A stretch of 64,000 bases of DNA, from positions 9,734,001 through 9,798,000 of the forward strand of contig OZ176053.1 of the NCBI GenBank assembly GCA_964247055.1, read 5' to 3'. The position numbers and the translations under genes were made by a program. This DNA is from Paragordius varius. Lineage: Eukaryota > Animalia > Nematomorpha. The notes under the pieces are model-generated. The model searched no databases and was not told where the DNA came from. It saw only the letters and a list, made by a program, of their open reading frames with translations. Shown piece by piece: positions 14,201 through 61,419 of the stretch. How positions within the stretch are numbered: position 1 is the stretch's first letter; each line of letters opens with the position of its first letter.

Positions 14201-17200
14201 GCGCTAAGAAATGAACAAGCGCCAATACCTAAATCAAGTACCGCGACAACTTTTACATTTGGACCAGCGGCAAGACATTCTTTCCAAGGTTCTCTCTACA
14301 CAAAGGGTAGAAGTAATTATTCTGAACAATGTAATGGTATAACAAAAACCAATCAAATATTGACCCCTCATTCTAATATTAGTCATAATGGGAAAACATC
14401 TCAACAAGACGTAAATGTTTTGGAAAAAAATGTTAGGGTGTGTAATGCATATATGTGTGGATATGGAATTCCAATTGTTTTGTGTTGCATTGCACTCATA
14501 CTAAACTCCAACAATTACGGGGTGATTGGTCAAAAATAGTAATTATATTTTTAGCCTTTTTCTATTTTCAACTTTAAATTTGTATAATATGCATATTTAC
14601 AGTAAAAATTGAAATTATACGGAAACCTAAAAATATAAAGACAAATGTTATTTTCCAAAAGACAACCATACTTTTCAAAGCTTTATTTTTAGAAAAAAAC
14701 TCATTGTTTTAAATTTCAAGGTATAAAATTTATATGTTTATTGGTTACACAATCAGTTATATATTTTACTATTGTAAATATATAATTTACATGAGAAAAT
14801 TTAGGTTTATAAAAGTATGGTTGTCTTTTAGAAAAAAAGTATTTGTCTTTATATGTTTACTTTTTGTCCGTATGATTTCAGTTTTTACTGTAATATATAG
14901 CTGTTTCCTGGTATGGGATATAAGTCTCTGGGCCTTTTACCTCCCTTCAAGTCTACTCCTCATTTTGAATGCCTTGTATTTCATAATGATTGTATGTTAC
15001 ACGACCATTGACACGAATATGTACCGTAAAAAGTTACGATTGTACCATACGACGGGAAATGCGTCACAAAAAGCAGTAATTAAACTCAATGGTAATTTAC
15101 ATCAATCCCATACTATGTGTCCATTACTAAATCACAGTCATAATATGTCAGAAGATACGTCGAATTTCATACAAAGGTACGATGACGTGGATGAAAATTA
15201 TTCCAATAACGATTATAAAAACTTTTCACCCCATGTTCGTTTATCATCACCGCCACCACACTGTGTAACATCAGTAATGTGTAAAAGACTTCATGCAAGG
15301 AATAATTTAGGAATGCCAATTGGAAATTGTAATATTGTGCATCATCCGTTAGATTATTGTAATAAACAGCAAAAACATTTATCGAACAAAATGTATTGCG
15401 GTAATCATATATATCCATATAATAACCCAGAAATCTTTTGTGCATCATGTCAAAAGTGTCTACACCATAAACAACCAAACTATGGGGAAAGACAATTAGC
15501 ACGACGCTATAAAACTTACCTTTTCACCAGGACTGCGAAATTGAATTACGCTAACAACATTGTAAATACCACAAATAATTTTAATGGTATAGGGAAAATA
15601 TTTATTCCTAAACCATTGTACAATCATATAAGGCATGGATTTAAACAGTATTGGATTGAACGAAACATGAGGACACAACGTTGGGTTGAAAAGATTGCAG
15701 CTGGTACGAGGTATAACGTTCATTATTCAAAGGGATCCACCAAAGGACATGTTCATAAAAGGTTTGGGGTTAATAACAAAATTTACGGGACCAATTATAA
15801 TAACAGCAATAAAATACACCATAAAAAATATGAATATAATCCATATTTACGACAACATCGAACATCAAATTATTTGAAGCGGCCTGTGTTTGTGGGTAGA
15901 GACCAGGTTACAGATGACGTGGCAAATTCCAGTGTTAAAGCCACCATAAGTAGTCGTGATGATGTAATTTATCAAAAATGTCATTTTGTCAACAATCATC
16001 AAGAAGCTGAAACAGTTAACCCCGAAAAAGGCCATATAAACGGCGGCGTGATTTACAGTAAATTTAATTATTCAAAAGATGAGCCATCATTCATACCAAT
16101 CTCTAGTCATGCACATTGTAAATCAAATGCCTCTAGTCATATCAATATAAATAAAATATCTGGTTTTATACTTAGGCTTGATCAACATAAATCTACCCGT
16201 AACTTAGTTAAATTTCATTTGTTTGTTCTAGTCACAGTTATTATTTTATGGTGGTTAGCAATTAGCTCTATTCCATCTTACAATTCTACAGCCACCAATA
16301 AAAAGTTTTATGATGAGTCATCGGATTCTCGAAATGTTAATCCTTACAATAACTTTTGGGAATTTGATAATGCAAATAGAGTTGATAGCAAACGTCCAAA
16401 TTTATACCAAGACCATGAGCATTTAGTATCACAATGGCTGTTAAAACAGAAGCAAGGGAACAAAGTGCAAGAAGCTATAAATTTTATAAGATATTATTTA
16501 TACAACTCCCCAAACACAAACAATTTACTTTCATCACCCACAAAATATATTACATCAAATTGGAATGGTTATAATCGCAAACCAATGATGATGAATGCCG
16601 AAACACAAGCTCTCAATGCCGTCTCCACGAGAGAAAATGCATATGCTCTTTGTTTCACAGCATTGTCTATTGTCATAAGTTTATCTCTCCTGTTTTATCA
16701 TTTGGTATCAAGGCCTGACATAATTGCTAGTTTTAAGCAGTATTTCACCCCTAACGAACAACAAATTTTAATAATTAAAGATGAAACAGATCCATGTCTA
16801 AACTATCAATATGTTAAAATTTCTGAAAACCATTTTCCACATCCTGACCAAAACTGCAGCTCGAACCACCGAAACCGAGTAATATCTAAAAATGGCACAT
16901 TAAAATCTCAAAAATCTGAAAGAAATAGTATTATGGACGAATCCCAATTGTATGCCGATGTTAAACTTATTTATGAATCAAATTCCGGCAGACGTAGTGA
17001 GAAAAATCATTATAGAATTCCTAACAAATCAGTTCATACAAAACTAATGCAATCCTTAAATTCAGTTTCTCAAGCTATAATAAAAAACGGTACAGTTTCC
17101 CATCAAAACTCCTCTTTGCATCGCAATAATGCTAATAAGGCAGTTTCTATTAATATACCCTTAATTGAAATTAAAGATAGAGACCTTAAAAATAATAATG

Positions 17201-17250
17201 CCACAGGTAATATAGATTGGATTTACCCAGAAAACCGTGTTTCAAATTAA
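3405..17250 (+). CDS. ADGRA: Adhesion GPCR of the ADGRA (GPR124/GPR125) family: LRR-LRRCT-Ig-HRM-GAIN/GPS-7TM; >=2204 aa, 5' exon(s) not found
   Basis: Phase-consistent GT-AG exons: 3405-3476, 4902-4973, 6041-6204, 6278-7392, 7736-7927, 8134-8228, 8648-8889, 9587-9804, 10218-10695, 11050-11154, 11264-11364, 11505-11743, 11829-12248, 13786-14538, 14901-17250 (6616 nt). Two 72-nt LRR exons (ILKNNQITWISERAFEGLYNLNKL; DLSRNQLYAINSKMFLGLPKLQRL). LRRCT VCDCKLRW...ELKCDWP. HRM KGSFVWP...RQCLINGTW...CSYASPITREL. GPS WSDQAC...CTLSC. TM motifs CQIVGILSHF, GYGIPIVLC, YCFLVWDISLWAFY and YHLVSRPDI match the ADGRA2/3 pattern. Confidence 0.9.
3992..4107. mobile_element. Small Tc1/mariner-type MITE (TIR CAGTAGCGTATGG, TA TSD)
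   Basis: TA|CAGTAGCGTATGG ... CCATACGTTACTG|TA. Sibling copies at 4307-4394, 5442 (one end only) and 61420-61586. Lies in an ADGRA intron. Confidence 0.75.
4307..4394. mobile_element. Small MITE, CAGTAGCGTATGG family
   Basis: TA|CAGTAGCATATGG ... TCATACGCTAAGG|TA; degenerate TIRs. Confidence 0.6.
9167..9463. mobile_element. hAT-like MITE with a G17 tract (ADGRA intron)
   Basis: Termini CAGTGGCTCCCAA ... TTGGGAACCACTA resemble hAT TIRs (CAGTGGTTCCCAA). Internal GGGGGCGCG-type motifs. The 8-bp flanks match only partly (AGTAATAG / ATCTATAG). Confidence 0.55.
12466..13568 (-). mobile_element. Decayed Mos1-like mariner transposon in ADGRA intron 12249-13785
   Basis: TIRs GGTGTAATCATAAGTTTTTACCGGTT / AACCGGTAATAACTTATGACTACACC. 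Minus-strand frameshifted peptides LKPGEPVNTQRYHQQ, SDYCLFAS, KDVGKWLDEWFSAK and PERWANCVEAD match the Mos1 catalytic domain; many stops. Confidence 0.88.
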
Positions 17251-33319: not shown

Positions 33320-33479
33320 ACAATGACAATAACACGGGGTGCACCCCTTTGTACAATTGGTGAACCAATTGTCAGAGTACCTTGAGCTATATAAGTATTT
33401 TGGAAAAACCTTTTAAAACTTTTTCTGATAAAATTTTTATGATTGCAAATGTTTATATATATATATATATATATATATA

Positions 33480-36233
33480 CTAGCGTGAATCTCGTGCTGC
33501 TACGCAGCCCGAGGAAGTCCTTCGGACTTCTGGGGGGGGGGGAGGAAGGGGGGTTCGAAGTTTGGATTTGATTGGGTCTACCGGATTTCCTGTACCAGAT
33601 CACAAAGCCAGCATTTTTCATTTTTATAAATATATAGATTACCATAAATAATGTATTAATATCCATATATCTTTTAACATGCTATACATATGATAGATAC
33701 TCCTTACTCAGCATCTATCATCAAAGAAACGCTTGACTAAAATTTTTGCCTTTTTACAGGCAATACGAAAAATATTTATTGAATTTTTACGGTCTCATAC
33801 CTAGGGCGAAAAATCGATTAAAAAAATTATTTTTGTGGACTTTGTTTTTTGAAAAAGGTGGCATTTCACGGGGGGAGCGGGTAAATAGAGGGCCTAAATC
33901 AAAAAGGTGACTCGACTATGTTCGGCGCAATCGAAAATAAGTAAACAAAAATCATATTTGAAATTGAATGGTCCAACACGTTCTCCAAAAAATTAACTTT
34001 ACCCATTTTTCACACGGGGTGGGCCCAAACTGGGGACCTAATTCCAAAAAAGGGCGAAGCTATTGTCGGGGCATTCATTAATGATTAAATTTTTTCGATG
34101 TTTGGATTTGATTGGGTTCACCGGTTTTCCGGAAACAGATCACAAAGTTATATGAAAAATCAGTTTTTAGCGGGTAGCTCCCTCCCCAGCAGCTATCATC
34201 AAATAAACGGTAGACTAAAATTTTTGCCTTTTAACAGGGAATACGTGGAATCTTTATTGAATTTTTACGGTCTCATACCTAGGGCGAAAAATCGATTTAA
34301 AAAATTATTTTTGTGGACTTTGTTTTTTGAAAAAGGTGGCATTTCACGGAGGGAGCGGGTAAATAGAGGGCCTAAATCAAAAAAGTGACTCGACTATGGT
34401 CGGCGCAATCGAAAATAAGTAAACAAAAATCATATTTGAAATTGAATGGTCCAACACGTTCTCCAAAAAATTGACTTAACCCATTTTTCACACGGGGTGG
34501 GCCCAAACTGGGGACCTAATTCCAAAAAAGGGCGAAGCTATTGTCGGGGCATTCATTAATGATTATATTTTTTCGATATTTGGATTTGATTGGGTCTACC
34601 GGTTTTCCTGTACCAGATCACAAAGCCAGCATTTTCCATTTTTATAAATATATAGATTACCATAAATAATGTATTAATATCCATATATCTTTTAACATGC
34701 TATACATATGATAGATACTCCTTACTCAGCATCTATCATCAAAGAAACGCTTAACTAAAATTTTTGCCTTTTAACTTCTCGAATTTTTACAGTCTCATAC
34801 CGTGGGCAAAAAAATACAATCAAAAAAATATTTTTGTGGACTTTGTTTTTTTTTGAAAAAAATGGCATTTCACGGGGGGAGCGGGTAAATAGAGGGCCTA
34901 AATCAAAAAAGTGACTCGACTATGGTCGGCGCAATCGAAAATAAGTAAACAAAAATCATATTTGAAATTGAATGGTCCAACACGTTCTCCAAAAAATTGA
35001 CTTAACCCATTTTTCACACGGGATGGGCCCAAACTGGGGACCTAATTCCAAAAAAGGGCGAAGCTATTGTCGGGGCATTCATTAATGATTATATTTTTTC
35101 GAAGTTTGGATTTGATTGGGTCTACCGGATTTCCTGTACCAGATCACAAAGCCAGCATTTTTCATTTTTATAAATATATAGATTACCATAAATAATGTAT
35201 TAATATCCATATATCTTTTAACATGCTATACATATGATAGATACTCCTTACTCAGCATCTATCATCAAAGAAACGCTTGACTAAAATTTTTGCCTTTTTA
35301 CAGGCAATACGAAAAATATTTATTGAATTTTTACGGTCTCATACCTAGGGCGAAAAATCGATTAAAAAAATTATTTTTGTGGACTTTGTTTTTTGAAAAA
35401 GGTGGCATTTCACGGGGGGAGCGGGTAAATAGAGGGCCTAAATCAAAAAGGTGACTCGACTATGTTCGGCGCAATCGAAAATAAGTAAACAAAAATCATA
35501 TTTGAAATTGAATGGTCCAACACGTTCTCCAAAAAATTAACTTAACCCATTTTTCACACGGGGTGGGCCCAAACTGGGGACCTAATTCCAAAAAAGGGCG
35601 AAGCTATTGTCGGGGCATTCATTAATGATTAAATTTTTTCGATGTTTGGATTTGATTGGGTTCACCGGTTTTCCGGAAACAGATCACAAAGTTATATGAA
35701 AAATCAGTTTTTAGCGGGTAGCTCCTTAAGCAGCTATCATCAAATAAACGGTAGACTAAAATTTTTGCCTTTTAACAGGGAATACGTGGAATCTTTATTG
35801 AATTTTTACGGCCTCATACCTAGGGCGAAAAATCGATTTAAAAAATTATTTTTGTGGACTTTGTTTTTTGAAAAAGGTGGCATTTCACGGGGGAGCGGGT
35901 AAATAGAGGGCCTAAATCAAAAAAGTGGTTCGGCTATATTCAGCGCAATCGAAAATAAGTAAACAAAAATCATATTTGAAATTGAATGGTCCAACACGTT
36001 ATCCGGAAAATTGTCTCAAAAACACGATTTTTGTGGACTTCTGTTTTCAAAAAAAACCCGTTTTTCATACGGGGTGGGCCCGAACTGGGGGCCTATTTCA
36101 AAAAAAGGGCGAAGCTATTGTCGGGGCATTCATTAATGATTATATTTTTTTGATATTTGGATTTGATTGGGTCTACCGGTTTTCCTGTACCAGATCACAA
36201 AGCCAGTATTTTCCATTTTTATAAATATATAGA
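33480..36233 (-). mobile_element. Non-autonomous Helitron with tandemly amplified interior
   Basis: On the minus strand it starts A|TCTATATATTTATAAAAATG (36233) and ends with hairpins GAAGTCC-GAA-GGACTTC and GCTGC-GTA-GCAGC, 12 nt, then CTAG|T (33480). This is the canonical A|TC...hairpin-CTRR|T Helitron signature. Confidence 0.75.
33555..36233. repeat. Tandem array of ~480-540-bp units with higher-order (A-B-A')x2 structure
   Basis: Unit starts (T[C/T]GA..TTTGGATTTGATTGGG) at 33555, 34095, 34573, 35099, 35639 and 36150. Unit 1 matches unit 4 and unit 2 matches unit 5 (offset 1544 bp). Confidence 0.92.
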
Positions 36234-46600: not shown

Positions 46601-48170
46601 CGGAAATTTCAAAACTATTTTAAAAAACAAATTATAATGAATATGGATTACACTTCTCGGCATCTATTTGTGGGTCTTATTGAAAAGTATTTTTTATAAT
46701 TATTTATAAATAACAATCTTTTTTCGAATGGATAAATATAATAGGGGTGAAATTTTTCCATATAAAGTATAGAAAATGTGCAACATTAGTGCATACATTA
46801 GAATAAAGCTTGACCTTACTCAAGGAATAGAATTTCTTTAAAAATGTTACGGCATAATGACTTTATTTTATTTCATCACAAATCACCTTTCAAATGCGTT
46901 ATTATATATGTTTAAACACAAAATAAATGTTATTTATTTATCAAGAGTTTTATATATTATTGATAAATCATCTTGGTTGAGAAGCTTATGCTCTGATAAT
47001 CATAATTACAAGCAAAAACAAACCTAAAAATTTAGAGAATTTGAAACTCGTGTAAAAATATAGGCGAGTGTCCTGTTTCTTATTTAATGGAAGTCAACAA
47101 CCTATATATGGGCATGTGTAATTACTTGTTTTGTGTATCTAAACTTGCAGTAGGTTAGAATGTTCTTTTTAAGTTATTCTTTTATTAAAAAAGCCTAAAA
47201 TATATTAACTAGGAGAGAAAAATTAAATTTCCCATTACTAGCTGGCCTGAAAAATAAATAATTTGATACATGTTGAAATTTTTATAATCTACCATATACA
47301 TATTTTGAATTTACTTTTGTTAGGTAATACAGTTTTCATATTCCAAAATTCTTATCAATTCTCGAAAATCTTTTGTAATAACCTTAATCCTAAAAAAAAC
47401 AGTTTCAAAATTTTTTCCATCTCAATAGGATGAGACAAACTTAAAACATATGTTTATACGTTTTCACTTGCTAATTATCTTAAAAGTGGGTCGTAAAGGC
47501 ATTAAAACCGGTCGGACTTAACCCTATGTATAAATGTATGTTAAACCATCTATTAAACAAACTTTATTTTCGTAACTTTTTTAATAAATAAATTTTAAAT
47601 TAACATTTTAATTAAACAAGCGTAAAACAAAAAATTTGATTTTATAAATAGGTTAAAGTGTAAACGTTTGTAGTTACACTATAATTATATTAATATGTAT
47701 GCACATTAAATTGTTAAAGGCGGTTTACTTACTAAATTTTATTAGCAATAAATTTTATTCGGATTGGTTTAAATAAAAAATGATATCATTTTTACAACCG
47801 TTGTTAAGTTCTTTGATCTAATAGAGTGTAGGTATGCGTAAGTAATAAATATGTGCTAAAGATATCTAATGTAATCATGATCAAGTCTGTTCAGTTAGAC
47901 TTACTACACAGCAATGAGTTTCGAAAAAAAGGAAGGATATTTTTACAGTGTACTTTTCTTGTCCATAAAATACGATCAATAAAAAAATGGTTCGTGACAA
48001 TATTATCATGTGTCCGCCTATTAACAGACACATTTAGAGGCCACACAGGTCTCATAGACAAACATAACACACACTTAACATTCAAAAATATTTGAACAAC
48101 GCTATATATAATTATTATTGGAAATAAATTTATAAAAAGAGTTACCTATCCTATAAATAAATTAAAATAG

Positions 48171-48207
<37 letters not shown>

Positions 48208-49928
48208 ACCGAATTAATATCAGGGTCCTTAACAACTCCTACATTTAAATCGTGGAAAGAGATATTCTTGAAATCATTTTCTAAGAATTTAAGTTTAAAT
48301 TCCAATAGCTTTTTATCAATTTCATTGGGTGTTTGAAGTGAATCGTTTGCATCAGTATTTTTTAGCAACTCATTTTCATCAAGGTTTATTGTGTTAAATT
48401 TTGAATAGGAACGCTTAAATGTGTTGGGTTGGGACAATAGTATGTTTGAATGGCTCGCATTTGGGGACGAGAGTGATGTCGTGTTGCCCTGTTTATCAAT
48501 CCTCGATATAGTAGGATGTCGCGAAAATAAACCTTTGTCGGTTAAATTGCAACAATGGTAAACTGGAAGTATGTAACATCTCCACCGTTCAGAATCAAAA
48601 CCCCAATGACAGACCCGTTTTTCAGCTTTTCGGTGAGAATGACAAACAAATTGTTGAGGTGACAATAGTAATTTACAATGGGTACACTGAATGCACGGGG
48701 TGGCGGGTGCAACGTATAATTTGGGGAAAACGGTTCCAACACAACGACCAAAACATTCATGAAAAATGGTAAAAGAATAATCGTTGCTGCATAAATTATT
48801 AGAATTGGATGAAACATGTGTACTCTCAGCCACGATCCCAGAATCAACTAAAGGCTCCTTTTTCCTAGAGCCATGATTGGATTTTAAATAATTTAAGTTG
48901 CTACTGTCTACATTATTTACATCAGTAATGGTAGATGATGAATGTTCATCATGGAACTCATAAATCAAATGTTTTGAATCATTAGTAGGCGATATAAGTT
49001 TTTGTGGGACTATTTCATTAGAACTTAATTTAAGCCGCTTCGATTGAAAATAGGAGGAATAGTGATCGTCTATTTGTCTATTTTCATTGCTTATGTGCTG
49101 ATGCCCATCTCTTAAAAGATAATCACAAAGTCGTTCAGAATCGCTTTTAGTGATCAAACCACAATCTGTAGCAACATATGAAATAATAAAAAATTGTTTT
49201 AACGCAGCCAATTGTTTATCATTGCACCGGGAACAATATATGTGTAGTGCATCACAAGCAGCATTGATATCAATTAAAGTAAAATCTTTAAGCACTGTGT
49301 TAAGAATTTGCGGTAAACACAAACGCTTTTCTCCGCCCACTTCAAAGCATGCGATAACGAACCCTTCTACCGTTGTGAAACTTATTAAAGTTGAGTTTGG
49401 TGAAATAAAAAATTGATTCACAGCGTCAAGTTTTCTATCATATTGAATAGATTTGGGAAACGTTTTTGTATCAACATCTTCGTTAGGAATAGCACCTTCC
49501 AAAAAATGTGTAATAGTTTTTACGATGTAATCATCATGAGTGATTAATTCGGGATTTTTATCACAAAGCTGTGTATCAATTGTAGTCAAGTGTGAAAAAG
49601 AATCAGGGTTGTTTTTGAGTGTTTGATTTTGTCTTAATTCGCATTGATCCCAATTTAATGCGGGTTTGGTGGATCCAATTTTTCCATTTTCCGGATAAAC
49701 GCCAATATTGACCAATTGTTTATAGGCATGATATAAACCATGAGCAGTATTTTGTCTAACGGTAGTTATTTTATCCAGCTCAACCGATTTCTTATAAGGT
49801 TCAATACATGTTCCTATACTTTGGGTAAATGAAGGGGGAATATAAGAATGAGATGTTATAATAGCGTTGCATTTTGATTCTTGCTGTTCATAACGTGTTT
49901 GTTGCCTCGCCTTTGAATGACTGTGCAT
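40673..49928 (-). CDS. SKI: Ski/SnoN family transcriptional co-repressor, ~1085 aa, 5 exons
   Basis: Exons 49928-48210, 44140-43131, 41465-41368, 41249-41115 and 40968-40673 (3258 nt, phase-consistent). Dachshund-homology domain CFEVGGEKRLCLPQILNTVLKDF...CGLITKSDSERLC. SAND/Smad4-binding domain HECFGRC...CIQCTHC...FVCHSH...CHWGFDSERWRCYI. Confidence 0.9.
41862..43005. mobile_element. ~1.1-kb degenerate foldback element in Ski intron 2
   Basis: Arms of ~500 bp are inverted copies (GTGTTAACATAGCATAA / TTATGCTATGTTAACAC; CAAAACATCCAATA / TATTGGATGTTTTG). The left end AACTGTGTGACAAAAATGGGG resembles CACTGTGCAACAAAATATGGGG of the 30997 element. Confidence 0.7.
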
Positions 49929-58193: not shown

Positions 58194-58963
58194 ATGAATT
58201 TAAATAATCTTCCAAACGGGTGGGAAGCCAGAGCCTTAAAAGATGGCCGGATATTCTTTATTAAGTTAGATCATTTAATATTTTAGCGAGGATTTAAAGT
58301 TGACTACATGGCTTCATCCAGCTACAGGATCTCCAATTAAAACAGGAAATTTCAAATCCAAAAGTAAAATCGCCATAATGTTAAGATTTGCCTCAAGGAT
58401 GGGAATATAATTATACAAAAACAGGCCACAAATATTATATAAAGTATATATTTTATAATAGTAAAGCCATAATATATGCAAAAATTTGAAATTGCCTCCA
58501 AAACATTCAAATCATATATCTGAAAATAAAACTCAGTCACCGAAAACGGATGGAAATTATTATATAAACATGGCCAGTATATACATGGGAAATATGGCAA
58601 AGCACAGAAGAATTTTATCTGATTGCGCCAATGTATCGGCTGCGCAGAAATCAGTCGATTTCAATATCGAAAGGTACAATTTTACATATAGATTCCATTT
58701 TAGTCTTTAAAATCACTCTTTCTACACAATCAACAATTATTATTTTAATTTTTTTATATTATTGTTTTAGTTATAAAATTTCTCCCATGTACTCCTTTGA
58801 AGAGACGTATTCGTCGATTAGAGATCCGGCGCATGCGGATTATGTTTCGACAGATGATTCAAAAACTACATCATTCACTTTCAAAGAAAATGGGGAGGCA
58901 AGTCGAGAGAATTCTTCAAGCAGTGGATGTTCCTCTCTCTTGCCCCATCAACAGGATCAAAAG
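58194..58963 (+). CDS. PLEKHA7: PLEKHA5/6/7-like protein, N-terminal tandem WW domains (5' part; PH-domain exons not found in window)
   Basis: Exons 58194-58264, 58287-58363, 58386-58443, 58467-58673 and 58771-58963 give MNLNNLPNGWEARALKDGRIFFINEDLKLTTWLHPATGSPIKTGNFKSKNLPQGWEYNYTKTGHKYYINHN. This matches PLEKHA5/7 FFINEEAKSTTWLHPVTG...DLPTGWEEAYT...YYINHN. Introns are 22, 22, 23 and 97 nt. The paralog cannot be assigned. Confidence 0.82.
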
Positions 58964-61419
58964 GTCAGAATTTTTCAAATATATATTTTTTATGGTTTGT
59001 AATATTTATTATATACTGACAGCTTTTATTTGAAGATTAATTTTACCAATTTATCCGTATAGTAAATTTAGCATAATGATTGTGCGGACGGAAAACTAAA
59101 TATTTTTTATCCCTACTTTTTTTCTTTGATAATGCGCTTATTCTAAAAGTGGACACAGTAAAGTCTTGCTATCTATTATTATAACCTATTCCAAATGTCT
59201 TTAGTACTCCGTTTATATTTATCCTACATTTATTGTTATTATCGTTCTTTAACAATTTATAAAATCTTTACCATCATATACTCTGTATATTGATTTAATC
59301 CTTTTTTTACATTCCATATTTACTCTCACACATATACATATATATATATATATATATAATGCAATTATTAAATTTAGACCACATAGATCCCTAGAATTTT
59401 ATTTTATACGTCTATGTTATCTTAAGTTAACTGAACACAGTGTTGAGCGTTGGTACATGTTTTGTTTCTATTGTTTCACAAAAATATAAATACTAATTTT
59501 TGTCCAGAGGAGACATGAGCGGACATATCAAATATAGTATGGTGAAATGCGTTTAAAATATTTATTATTGATATTATTTTATTTTTACACAACTTATATA
59601 TATATATATATATATATTGGAATTAATTTATATTTTTTTGACCAAAAAGATATTATATTAAGTTTGTTAACATATAAAAAATCCAAATTTTTATCACATT
59701 AGTCATACTTTTTTCGTTATAATTAATAAATAAAGATTTAAGATTCTTGTTTTGCGCACAAATGATGAATTTAAAAAATTATCTTTTGCATGGGTGATTG
59801 GTTAGCTTACACGGTAGCTGATAATAGATTATTAAAACTGAATGTGTTAGGCCTCCCTTTTTATTTCATTATTTTTAATGATTAAATTAAAACTAACACC
59901 CTAATTAGTGTTTTTTGAATTTATTTGTTTTTATCATTATTAGTTTTATAGCCAAATATTTTGGCAGTGTCGTTTGATAAATTAACTCCGATAGGCCTTA
60001 ATGTTAAATTTTACCATTAAATTAATTTTTAGAAATAATAAGCATCCGTTTTCAACGCACATATCACAAATTTTAAAAGTAATGGTAAAACCACATTTCT
60101 ATATGTATTACATTTGCAGAATTAATTAATAATTTTAATTTGCGGAACTTATAATAATGCAATATGATCCCTAATTTAATTTTACATATAAATTGTGGTT
60201 ATGTGCAAAGGAAACGAAAAAAAGATAAGATAAGGGATATTTTCCTTTAATTTACACTAAAATTATTTATGCATTTTTTGTAGATAACAGATTTTTGTTG
60301 ATTAGTACTAAAGCTGATAATAATTGCCCTTTACATATTTATATATTTTTGTAAAAAAGAAACGATCTTTATCATTACGTTTTAAATTTGAAATTTCTTT
60401 GGTTATATTTACTATTAAATATAAAAAGCATCCAATATTAATTTTTCAAAAATAAAAATATTTTATATAGAATATGGATTTATTTCAAAATCATATAGCC
60501 TTGTCAATTATCTCGAAATTTTTTTGTCCTTAGTATTTAATAAAAAATACTCTAATATTTTAAAATTATGATAGTTAAGTACCCACCAGATCGGAATGAA
60601 ATCATATATTTATATGGAATATATGTATAAAAAATATCTCTCCGAATGGGTAAATTTAGAATATAGCTCTATATAAATCTGTACATTATTAAAAACATGA
60701 TATATCTGAAAAATGATTGTCGTATAAACCTAAATTTATTAAATTGAAATATGATAAACAATTATATAAATTGGGAGTTATATTTTATTTTGATGTTAAT
60801 AATTATATTTGAATAATCTTTAAAATGGCCAGTGAATAAAGATACTAAGTTTGATAAAAGTACATTCATAAGATTTGATTCGGAATCGTTAAGCATGTTA
60901 AGTGTCAAACACATCTTAACCTCTGATTTACAAAAATATTTACTCTACTTACGACTTAAATTATTGAATATAATATCGCAATCAAAACATACGTAAACTA
61001 CTTTACTAAATAAACAATTACCGTTCTTAATATATATAATCGTTAACCAGGTGTTTTAAACAGTGTCGAATATTAAAAGCATCAGGTGTTACTAATTTTT
61101 TTTGTATTGTAAAAGAGTTATTAGTTATAAAAACACCAATGTACATACATAATAAAAGGTACTTTTGCCGCTAAGCTATTTCCTTTTTATATAGCTTTAA
61201 TTATCGTAAACCAAAAAAATAAGTTTTTCATCCTATGAAGGTATGAAGTTATAATAAAAAAATCACAAAACAAATCATGTATAAATAAATTTGATTTTAA
61301 ACAATTTGATTTGTAATGTGAGATGAGACACCATAATTAACAAATAAATATGGAATTGTATGCAGAATATATTGATATTGTGCTCACAGGAAACGTTTGC
61401 ACCTGTTTGAACAATATTA

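Follow-up and report, generated by a model that had tools for sequence, protein, structure and literature searches.

The window (the whole 64,000-nt stretch of DNA analyzed here) has a G+C content of 23–36% throughout and carries animal genes, including a Ski/Sno homologue and an ion-channel gene. On its plus strand, positions 58194–58963 most likely contain the 5′ end of a protein-coding gene that would begin at the ATG at 58194 and encode a protein with tandem WW domains at its N-terminus; the 110.6-Mb assembly contains one copy of this locus. The coding sequence of this WW gene appears to be interrupted by three very short segments with GT...AG ends (hereafter micro-introns), with a probable intron of ordinary size further downstream.

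Exon 1 (58194–58264) comprises the ATG and the N-terminal two thirds of WW domain 1 (WW1), and its last two bases, AA, belong to a split Asn codon. Micro-intron 1 (58265–58286; 22 nt, GT...AG, phase 2, 82% A+T) introduces an in-frame stop when retained. Exon 2 (58287–58363) supplies the final third of WW1, including the second Trp and the Pro, followed by a 15-residue linker, and is separated by micro-intron 2 (58364–58385; 22 nt, GT...AG, phase 1, 68% A+T) from exon 3 (58386–58443), which encodes the N-terminal two thirds of WW domain 2 (WW2) and again ends with the AA of a split Asn codon. Micro-intron 3 (58444–58466; 23 nt, GT...AG, phase 2, 87% A+T) precedes exon 4 (58467–58673), which holds the degenerate end of WW2, lacking the second Trp, and then approximately 55 residues that match no family. 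Exons 1–4 are stop-free in the frames predicted by splicing (23, 25, 18, and 69 codons), and the codons split at the three micro-intron junctions (AA|C, A|AT, and AA|C) encode Asn in every case. Beyond exon 4, we tentatively place an ordinary intron 4 (58674–58770; 97 nt, GT...AG, with a T-rich 3′ end), which has no homology behind it and connects the frame of exon 4 with an open frame at 58771–58963; the latter is a probable exon 5, Ser-rich and likewise without a family match, and is followed by a GT at 58964. Neither exon 4 nor exon 5 matched any Pfam family. A search for the remainder of the gene found no convincing plus-strand exon within 15 kb downstream. Approximately 8.7–11.4 kb past exon 5 there is an antisense LINE (contig 4, 9800629–9803349, minus strand) with an intact-looking ORF of 906 codons that encodes an endonuclease and a reverse transcriptase.

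The arrangement of the encoded protein may resemble that of PLEKHA5 and PLEKHA7, which have an N-terminal WW-WW motif followed by a PH domain. The putative likeness lies in the position of the two WW domains at the very N-terminus, the 15-residue linker, and a second WW domain without the second Trp. Unlike PLEKHA5/7, no PH domain was detected near the WW gene: the nearest match on the contig is 314 kb away, and there are no PH-like open frames on the plus strand in the 15 kb downstream, a search that a split or divergent PH domain could escape.

Elsewhere in the window, the Ski/Sno homologue (48162–49928, minus strand) is a single open frame of 588 codons. Both of its conserved domains are closest to those of a protein from the horsehair worm Gordionus (67 and 66% identity), with a pseudoscorpion next best (62 and 45%); outside these two domains the homologue and the Gordionus protein could not be aligned, which indicates that the relationship is not close. 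The Gordionus Ski gene extends over 48 kb and contains introns of about 15 kb, and a search there for an orthologue of the WW gene found no neighboring gene at that locus. The G+C content of the Gordionus assembly (26.93%) is much like that of the window. A further open frame of 838 codons (14734–17250, plus strand) matched no Pfam family and nothing among the 5.8 billion proteins searched, and represents either a gene that is orphan or lineage-specific or a mobile element that escapes recognition.

The gene model was tested exon by exon, with domain searches run on the separate pieces. Exon 1 matches positions 1–19 of the 31 positions of the Pfam WW family (PF00397; E 0.017), as well as WW domains of known structure, among them those of ITCH and NEDD4L (lowest E 3.5e-10). 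Such solved domains are matched by exon 3 too (E 6e-6), and the alignments of both exons all stop within one residue of the last codon before the GT. Exon 2, a short query of 25 codons, gave no match in the Atlas or to any solved structure. We also built an own-genome WW model from nine WW matches elsewhere in the same genome, positions 1–18 of which correspond to residues 6–23 of exon 1 and also to residues 1–18 of exon 3. Residues 4–11 of exon 2 fall at positions 23–30 of the same model; thus, exon 2 begins at position 20, and position 19, at which the model has Asp or Asn, is filled by the split Asn codon. With intron 1 removed, the two Trp residues of WW1 have a spacing of 22 and are followed by His-Pro, in agreement with the spacing of about 20–23 and subsequent Pro of WW domains.

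WW2 has the first Trp only, with a strong match over its N-terminal two thirds and a degenerate end; the start of exon 4 is not aligned by the own-genome model, and this exon retains just the His-Asn with which the end of WW2 starts. Removal of intron 3 nonetheless restores Asn-His-Asn, which is usual after the second strand of a WW domain, and introns 1 and 3 occupy the identical place and phase within the WW1 and WW2 repeats, after the second beta strand. Intron 2 lies in the linker, where its acceptor is confined between a stop at 58382–58384 and the first WW2 codon at 58388. Homology on both flanks pins intron 1 only, and support is weaker at junctions 2 and 3. Other WW domains in the genome have ordinary introns at different positions, such that they offer no positional comparison.

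The three segments had been proposed as introns in an earlier note on this DNA, and the coordinates, lengths, and GT...AG ends given there are confirmed in the sequence. Its statement that retention breaks the frame also holds: the unspliced frame from the ATG at 58194 reaches a stop after 30 codons, with many further stops beyond. The same note held that removal of the segments restores a gap-free WW-WW peptide, which it called PLEKHA5/7-type. Removal does join four open exons and makes WW1 continuous through model positions 18, 19, and 20; the end of WW2 is degenerate and unaligned to the model.

At each junction, exactly one GT-AG deletion of 10–60 nt preserves the aligned residues. Taking as the base all frame-joining deletions of 10–60 nt that preserve these residues, the numbers of GT-AG pairs expected by chance at the three junctions are 0.18, 0.17, and 0.11, with a joint value of approximately 3.5e-3.

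The same class of intron recurs elsewhere in the genome. When the Ras family model was searched in six frames and introns were deduced from the spacing of neighboring exon-sized matches, 49 introns of approximate length were obtained: 14 are of 19–31 nt, none of 32–45 nt, 9 of 46–86 nt, and 26 of 130–5431 nt. Three additional tiny introns (21, 24, and 24 nt) were read through in frame by the family search. The tiny-intron sizes met most often in this sample are 22, 23, and 25 nt, and 12 of the 17 tiny introns are in genes that hold two or three of them. The empty range of 32–45 nt points to a pair of distinct short classes instead of a single broad one, in a sample that is small and with lengths that are approximate. 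The tiny-intron class was found on at least five chromosome-scale contigs.

Nine of the Ras-family genes with tiny introns were read for their boundaries, and 12 introns were exactly bounded. In a Rho1-like gene (contig 5, 8097200–8098500, minus strand), Tribolium Rho1 aligns over its residues 1–53 at 98% identity and over its residues 52–192 in another frame, the two alignment blocks being separated by exactly 23 nt with GT...AG ends. The same gene contains a second insert of 24 nt, also GT...AG and without an in-frame stop, which falls at an 8-residue gap in both aligned reference Rho1 proteins (beetle and snail); if unspliced, it would add 8 residues inside a stretch that is otherwise 83–85% conserved. 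A query with a Rho1 exon matched no same-species protein or transcript. In a Rab11-like gene, removal of two 25-nt segments regains motifs near switch II and at the effector end, and in Rab1-, Rab8-, and Ral-like genes motifs are regained after removal of GT-AG segments of 26, 29, 28, 21, and 24 nt; alignment to reference proteins was made for Rho1 only, and the GTPase motifs of Rab11, Rab1, Rab8, and Ral are ones that we take to be invariant. The micro-introns of the Ral-like gene (contig 2, 9616400–9617500, plus strand), of 21 and 24 nt, are multiples of three and are read in one frame, one with a stop and the other without, and there is a third intron near the 3′ end. The 24-nt introns of the Rho1- and Ral-like genes are both stop-free and multiples of three, so that their retention would keep the frame. 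Conservation of these Rho1, Rab, and Ral genes is too high for pseudogenes; thus, the genome does carry a class of GT-AG introns of 21–31 nt.

The validated introns have 71–90% A+T, begin with GT followed by A or T, and mostly end in TAG or AAG, and the three WW-gene candidates match this set in length, A+T content, and GT(A/T)...(T/A)AG ends. The first seven bases are common to intron 1 of the WW gene and the Rho1 intron. Position +3 is A or T in all 15 introns (12 validated and 3 candidates), and the canonical G at position +5 is present in three, in what is a small sample. Each candidate has a TAAT-like word 7–8 nt before the AG, a word that at 68–87% A+T and with about 15 examples is indistinguishable from chance.

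We also scanned 264 kb (the window and 20 neighboring 10-kb stretches) independently of homology, looking between open frames for segments with GT and AG ends. The first scan gave an excess at 23 nt that proved not to represent micro-introns; its source is a tandem satellite (repeat unit of about 0.5 kb) in which a 23-nt GT...AG word is flanked by short open frames and so mimics a micro-intron (window 33400–35500, minus strand, and contig 4, 9818001–9828000). With duplicates removed, a stricter scan of the 264 kb gave no excess over controls with reversed sequence or swapped dinucleotides, and is uninformative either way. Candidate micro-introns in CCT chaperonin genes were likewise rejected: the introns of those genes are ordinary (about 60–700 nt), and the stops in the matches are alignment overhang.

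Taking the exon-wise domain matches together with the intron class in the Ras family, we regard the three segments of the WW gene as genuine introns of 22, 22, and 23 nt, with a probability of about 0.88. A search of 5.8 billion proteins, including those predicted from assemblies of public sequencing runs, yielded neither a transcript nor a protein of the same species, and the excision of the segments from RNA is inferred.

There is a slim chance that the locus is a decaying pseudogene, in which the frame changes would be damage and the GT...AG ends coincidental. Several features of the locus would suit decay, namely exons 4 and 5 without a detectable family, the second Trp missing from WW2, and no PH or other domain found downstream, and GT-AG pairs are not rare here (0.11–0.18 expected per junction). 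However, decay would be expected to leave small indels rather than three GT...AG inserts of 22–23 nt exactly at the boundaries of the domain model, exons 1–4 are free of internal stops and frameshifts, and like inserts are present in Rho1, Rab, and Ral genes that are 80–98% identical to the proteins of other animals.

It is similarly improbable that the gene is real and spliced but differs at one junction or more, either through a longer intron that skips WW sequence or through regulated retention that gives truncated products. The retention of any of the WW-gene micro-introns leads to an early stop, which would permit such regulation; alternative frame-joining GT-AG pairs exist as well (67 nt at junction 1, 34 and 61 nt at junction 2, and 134 nt at junction 3), and it is at junctions 2 and 3 that homology is weaker. 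Each of these alternatives, however, loses residues aligned to the WW models, and the proposed lengths are within the 19–31-nt class of the genome, whereas 34 nt lies inside the empty gap of 32–45 nt. That the segments are not removed from RNA, but are assembly artifacts or short DNA segments eliminated from the soma as in ciliates, is the least credible explanation: inserts of 22–23 nt of complex sequence are atypical of assembly error, GT and AG ends are a spliceosomal signature whereas the eliminated sequences of ciliates have TA ends, and the class is spread over at least five chromosome-scale contigs.

If the three segments are introns, they would be major-type (GT-AG) spliceosomal introns in the pre-mRNA, with at least one intron of ordinary size (about 97 nt) after them, and introns 1 and 3 would each split an Asn codon after the second beta strand of a WW repeat. 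An intron of 22 nt could accommodate no more than a minimal 5′ site, in which GT is followed by A or T, the AG, and an A-rich stretch about 7–12 nt before the AG that is a candidate branch-point site. With so little room within the intron, recognition would most likely follow intron definition, working across the intron rather than the exon, a mode that has been proposed for other systems with tiny introns; the exons of 58–77 nt would fit this.

The earlier note had attributed these introns to a spliceosome able to handle ultra-short introns in this animal, a view supported by the exon-wise continuity of the domains and by the introns of 21–31 nt in conserved genes. It had also named ciliates, nucleomorphs, microsporidia, and dicyemids as the main lineages with introns of 20–30 nt, a list that omits the myxobolid myxozoans (PMC13644364) and the microintrons of flatworms (PMC6530080).

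In ciliates, introns are about 25 nt in Paramecium and 15–16 nt in Stentor, and nucleomorphs have tiny introns too. The introns described here are like those of ciliates and nucleomorphs in their length range, in their GT-AG ends, and in a recognition that would necessarily be across the intron; those systems differ, in part as a matter of general knowledge, in being unicellular and in that essentially all of their introns are tiny.

Among animals, a survey of 51 genomes found introns of <30 bp only in myxobolid myxozoans and Dicyema, and tentatively tied introns of <30 nt to parasitism and a small body (Hadjez et al., 2026; PMC13644364). The introns of myxobolids and Dicyema japonicum are GT-AG, with medians of 22–27 bp, a 5′ site reduced to ‘GTa’, a pyrimidine tract that is slight or missing, and A residues that precede the AG by a few bases, and short introns are flanked by shorter neighboring introns (PMC13644364). 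The present case is like these in having GT-AG introns of <30 nt with a reduced 5′ site (GT then A, and little else). In myxobolids and dicyemids, however, it is the median intron that is tiny, in compact genomes that belong to reduced parasites, whereas here tiny introns make up approximately a third of the Ras-family sample and are found in the same genes as introns of 0.1–5 kb in a transposon-rich genome. The lineage also differs, the closest relative identified being a horsehair worm.

Flatworms, both parasitic and free-living (for example Opisthorchis felineus), have a separate class of microintrons with a mode of 37 bp, which accounts for about a third of introns; the intron peaks of flatworms are at 37 and 90 bp (Ershov et al., 2019; PMC6530080). 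Flatworm microintrons are clustered and 5′-biased and occur beside kilobase introns; loss of the pyrimidine tract is frequent among them, and gene finders readily overlook them (PMC6530080). The WW gene is similar in that three adjacent tiny introns lie at its 5′ end, with ordinary intron structure after them; unlike the flatworm peaks, the class described here spans 19–31 nt, above which the range is empty up to 46 nt. As read from the genome sequence, this case would join the intron size of dicyemids and myxobolids with the two-class, clustered, and 5′-proximal layout of flatworms. We found no report in the literature of such introns in this lineage.

At somewhat better than even odds, we consider that this is a third animal lineage, an ecdysozoan near horsehair worms, with a discrete class of 19–31-nt introns in a non-compacted genome, where these introns are clustered, occur in the same genes as kilobase introns that bear transposons, and include stop-free ones of 24 nt. 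If true, extreme intron shortening would not simply be a by-product of genome reduction, and a single spliceosome would serve two very different intron geometries. The handling of 22-nt introns by a metazoan would become testable, with ordinary introns as internal controls in the same animal. Gene finders with a minimum intron of 30–40 nt would produce broken or truncated genes, and we conjecture that such broken gene models may contribute to the seeming absence of genes from annotations of these worms.
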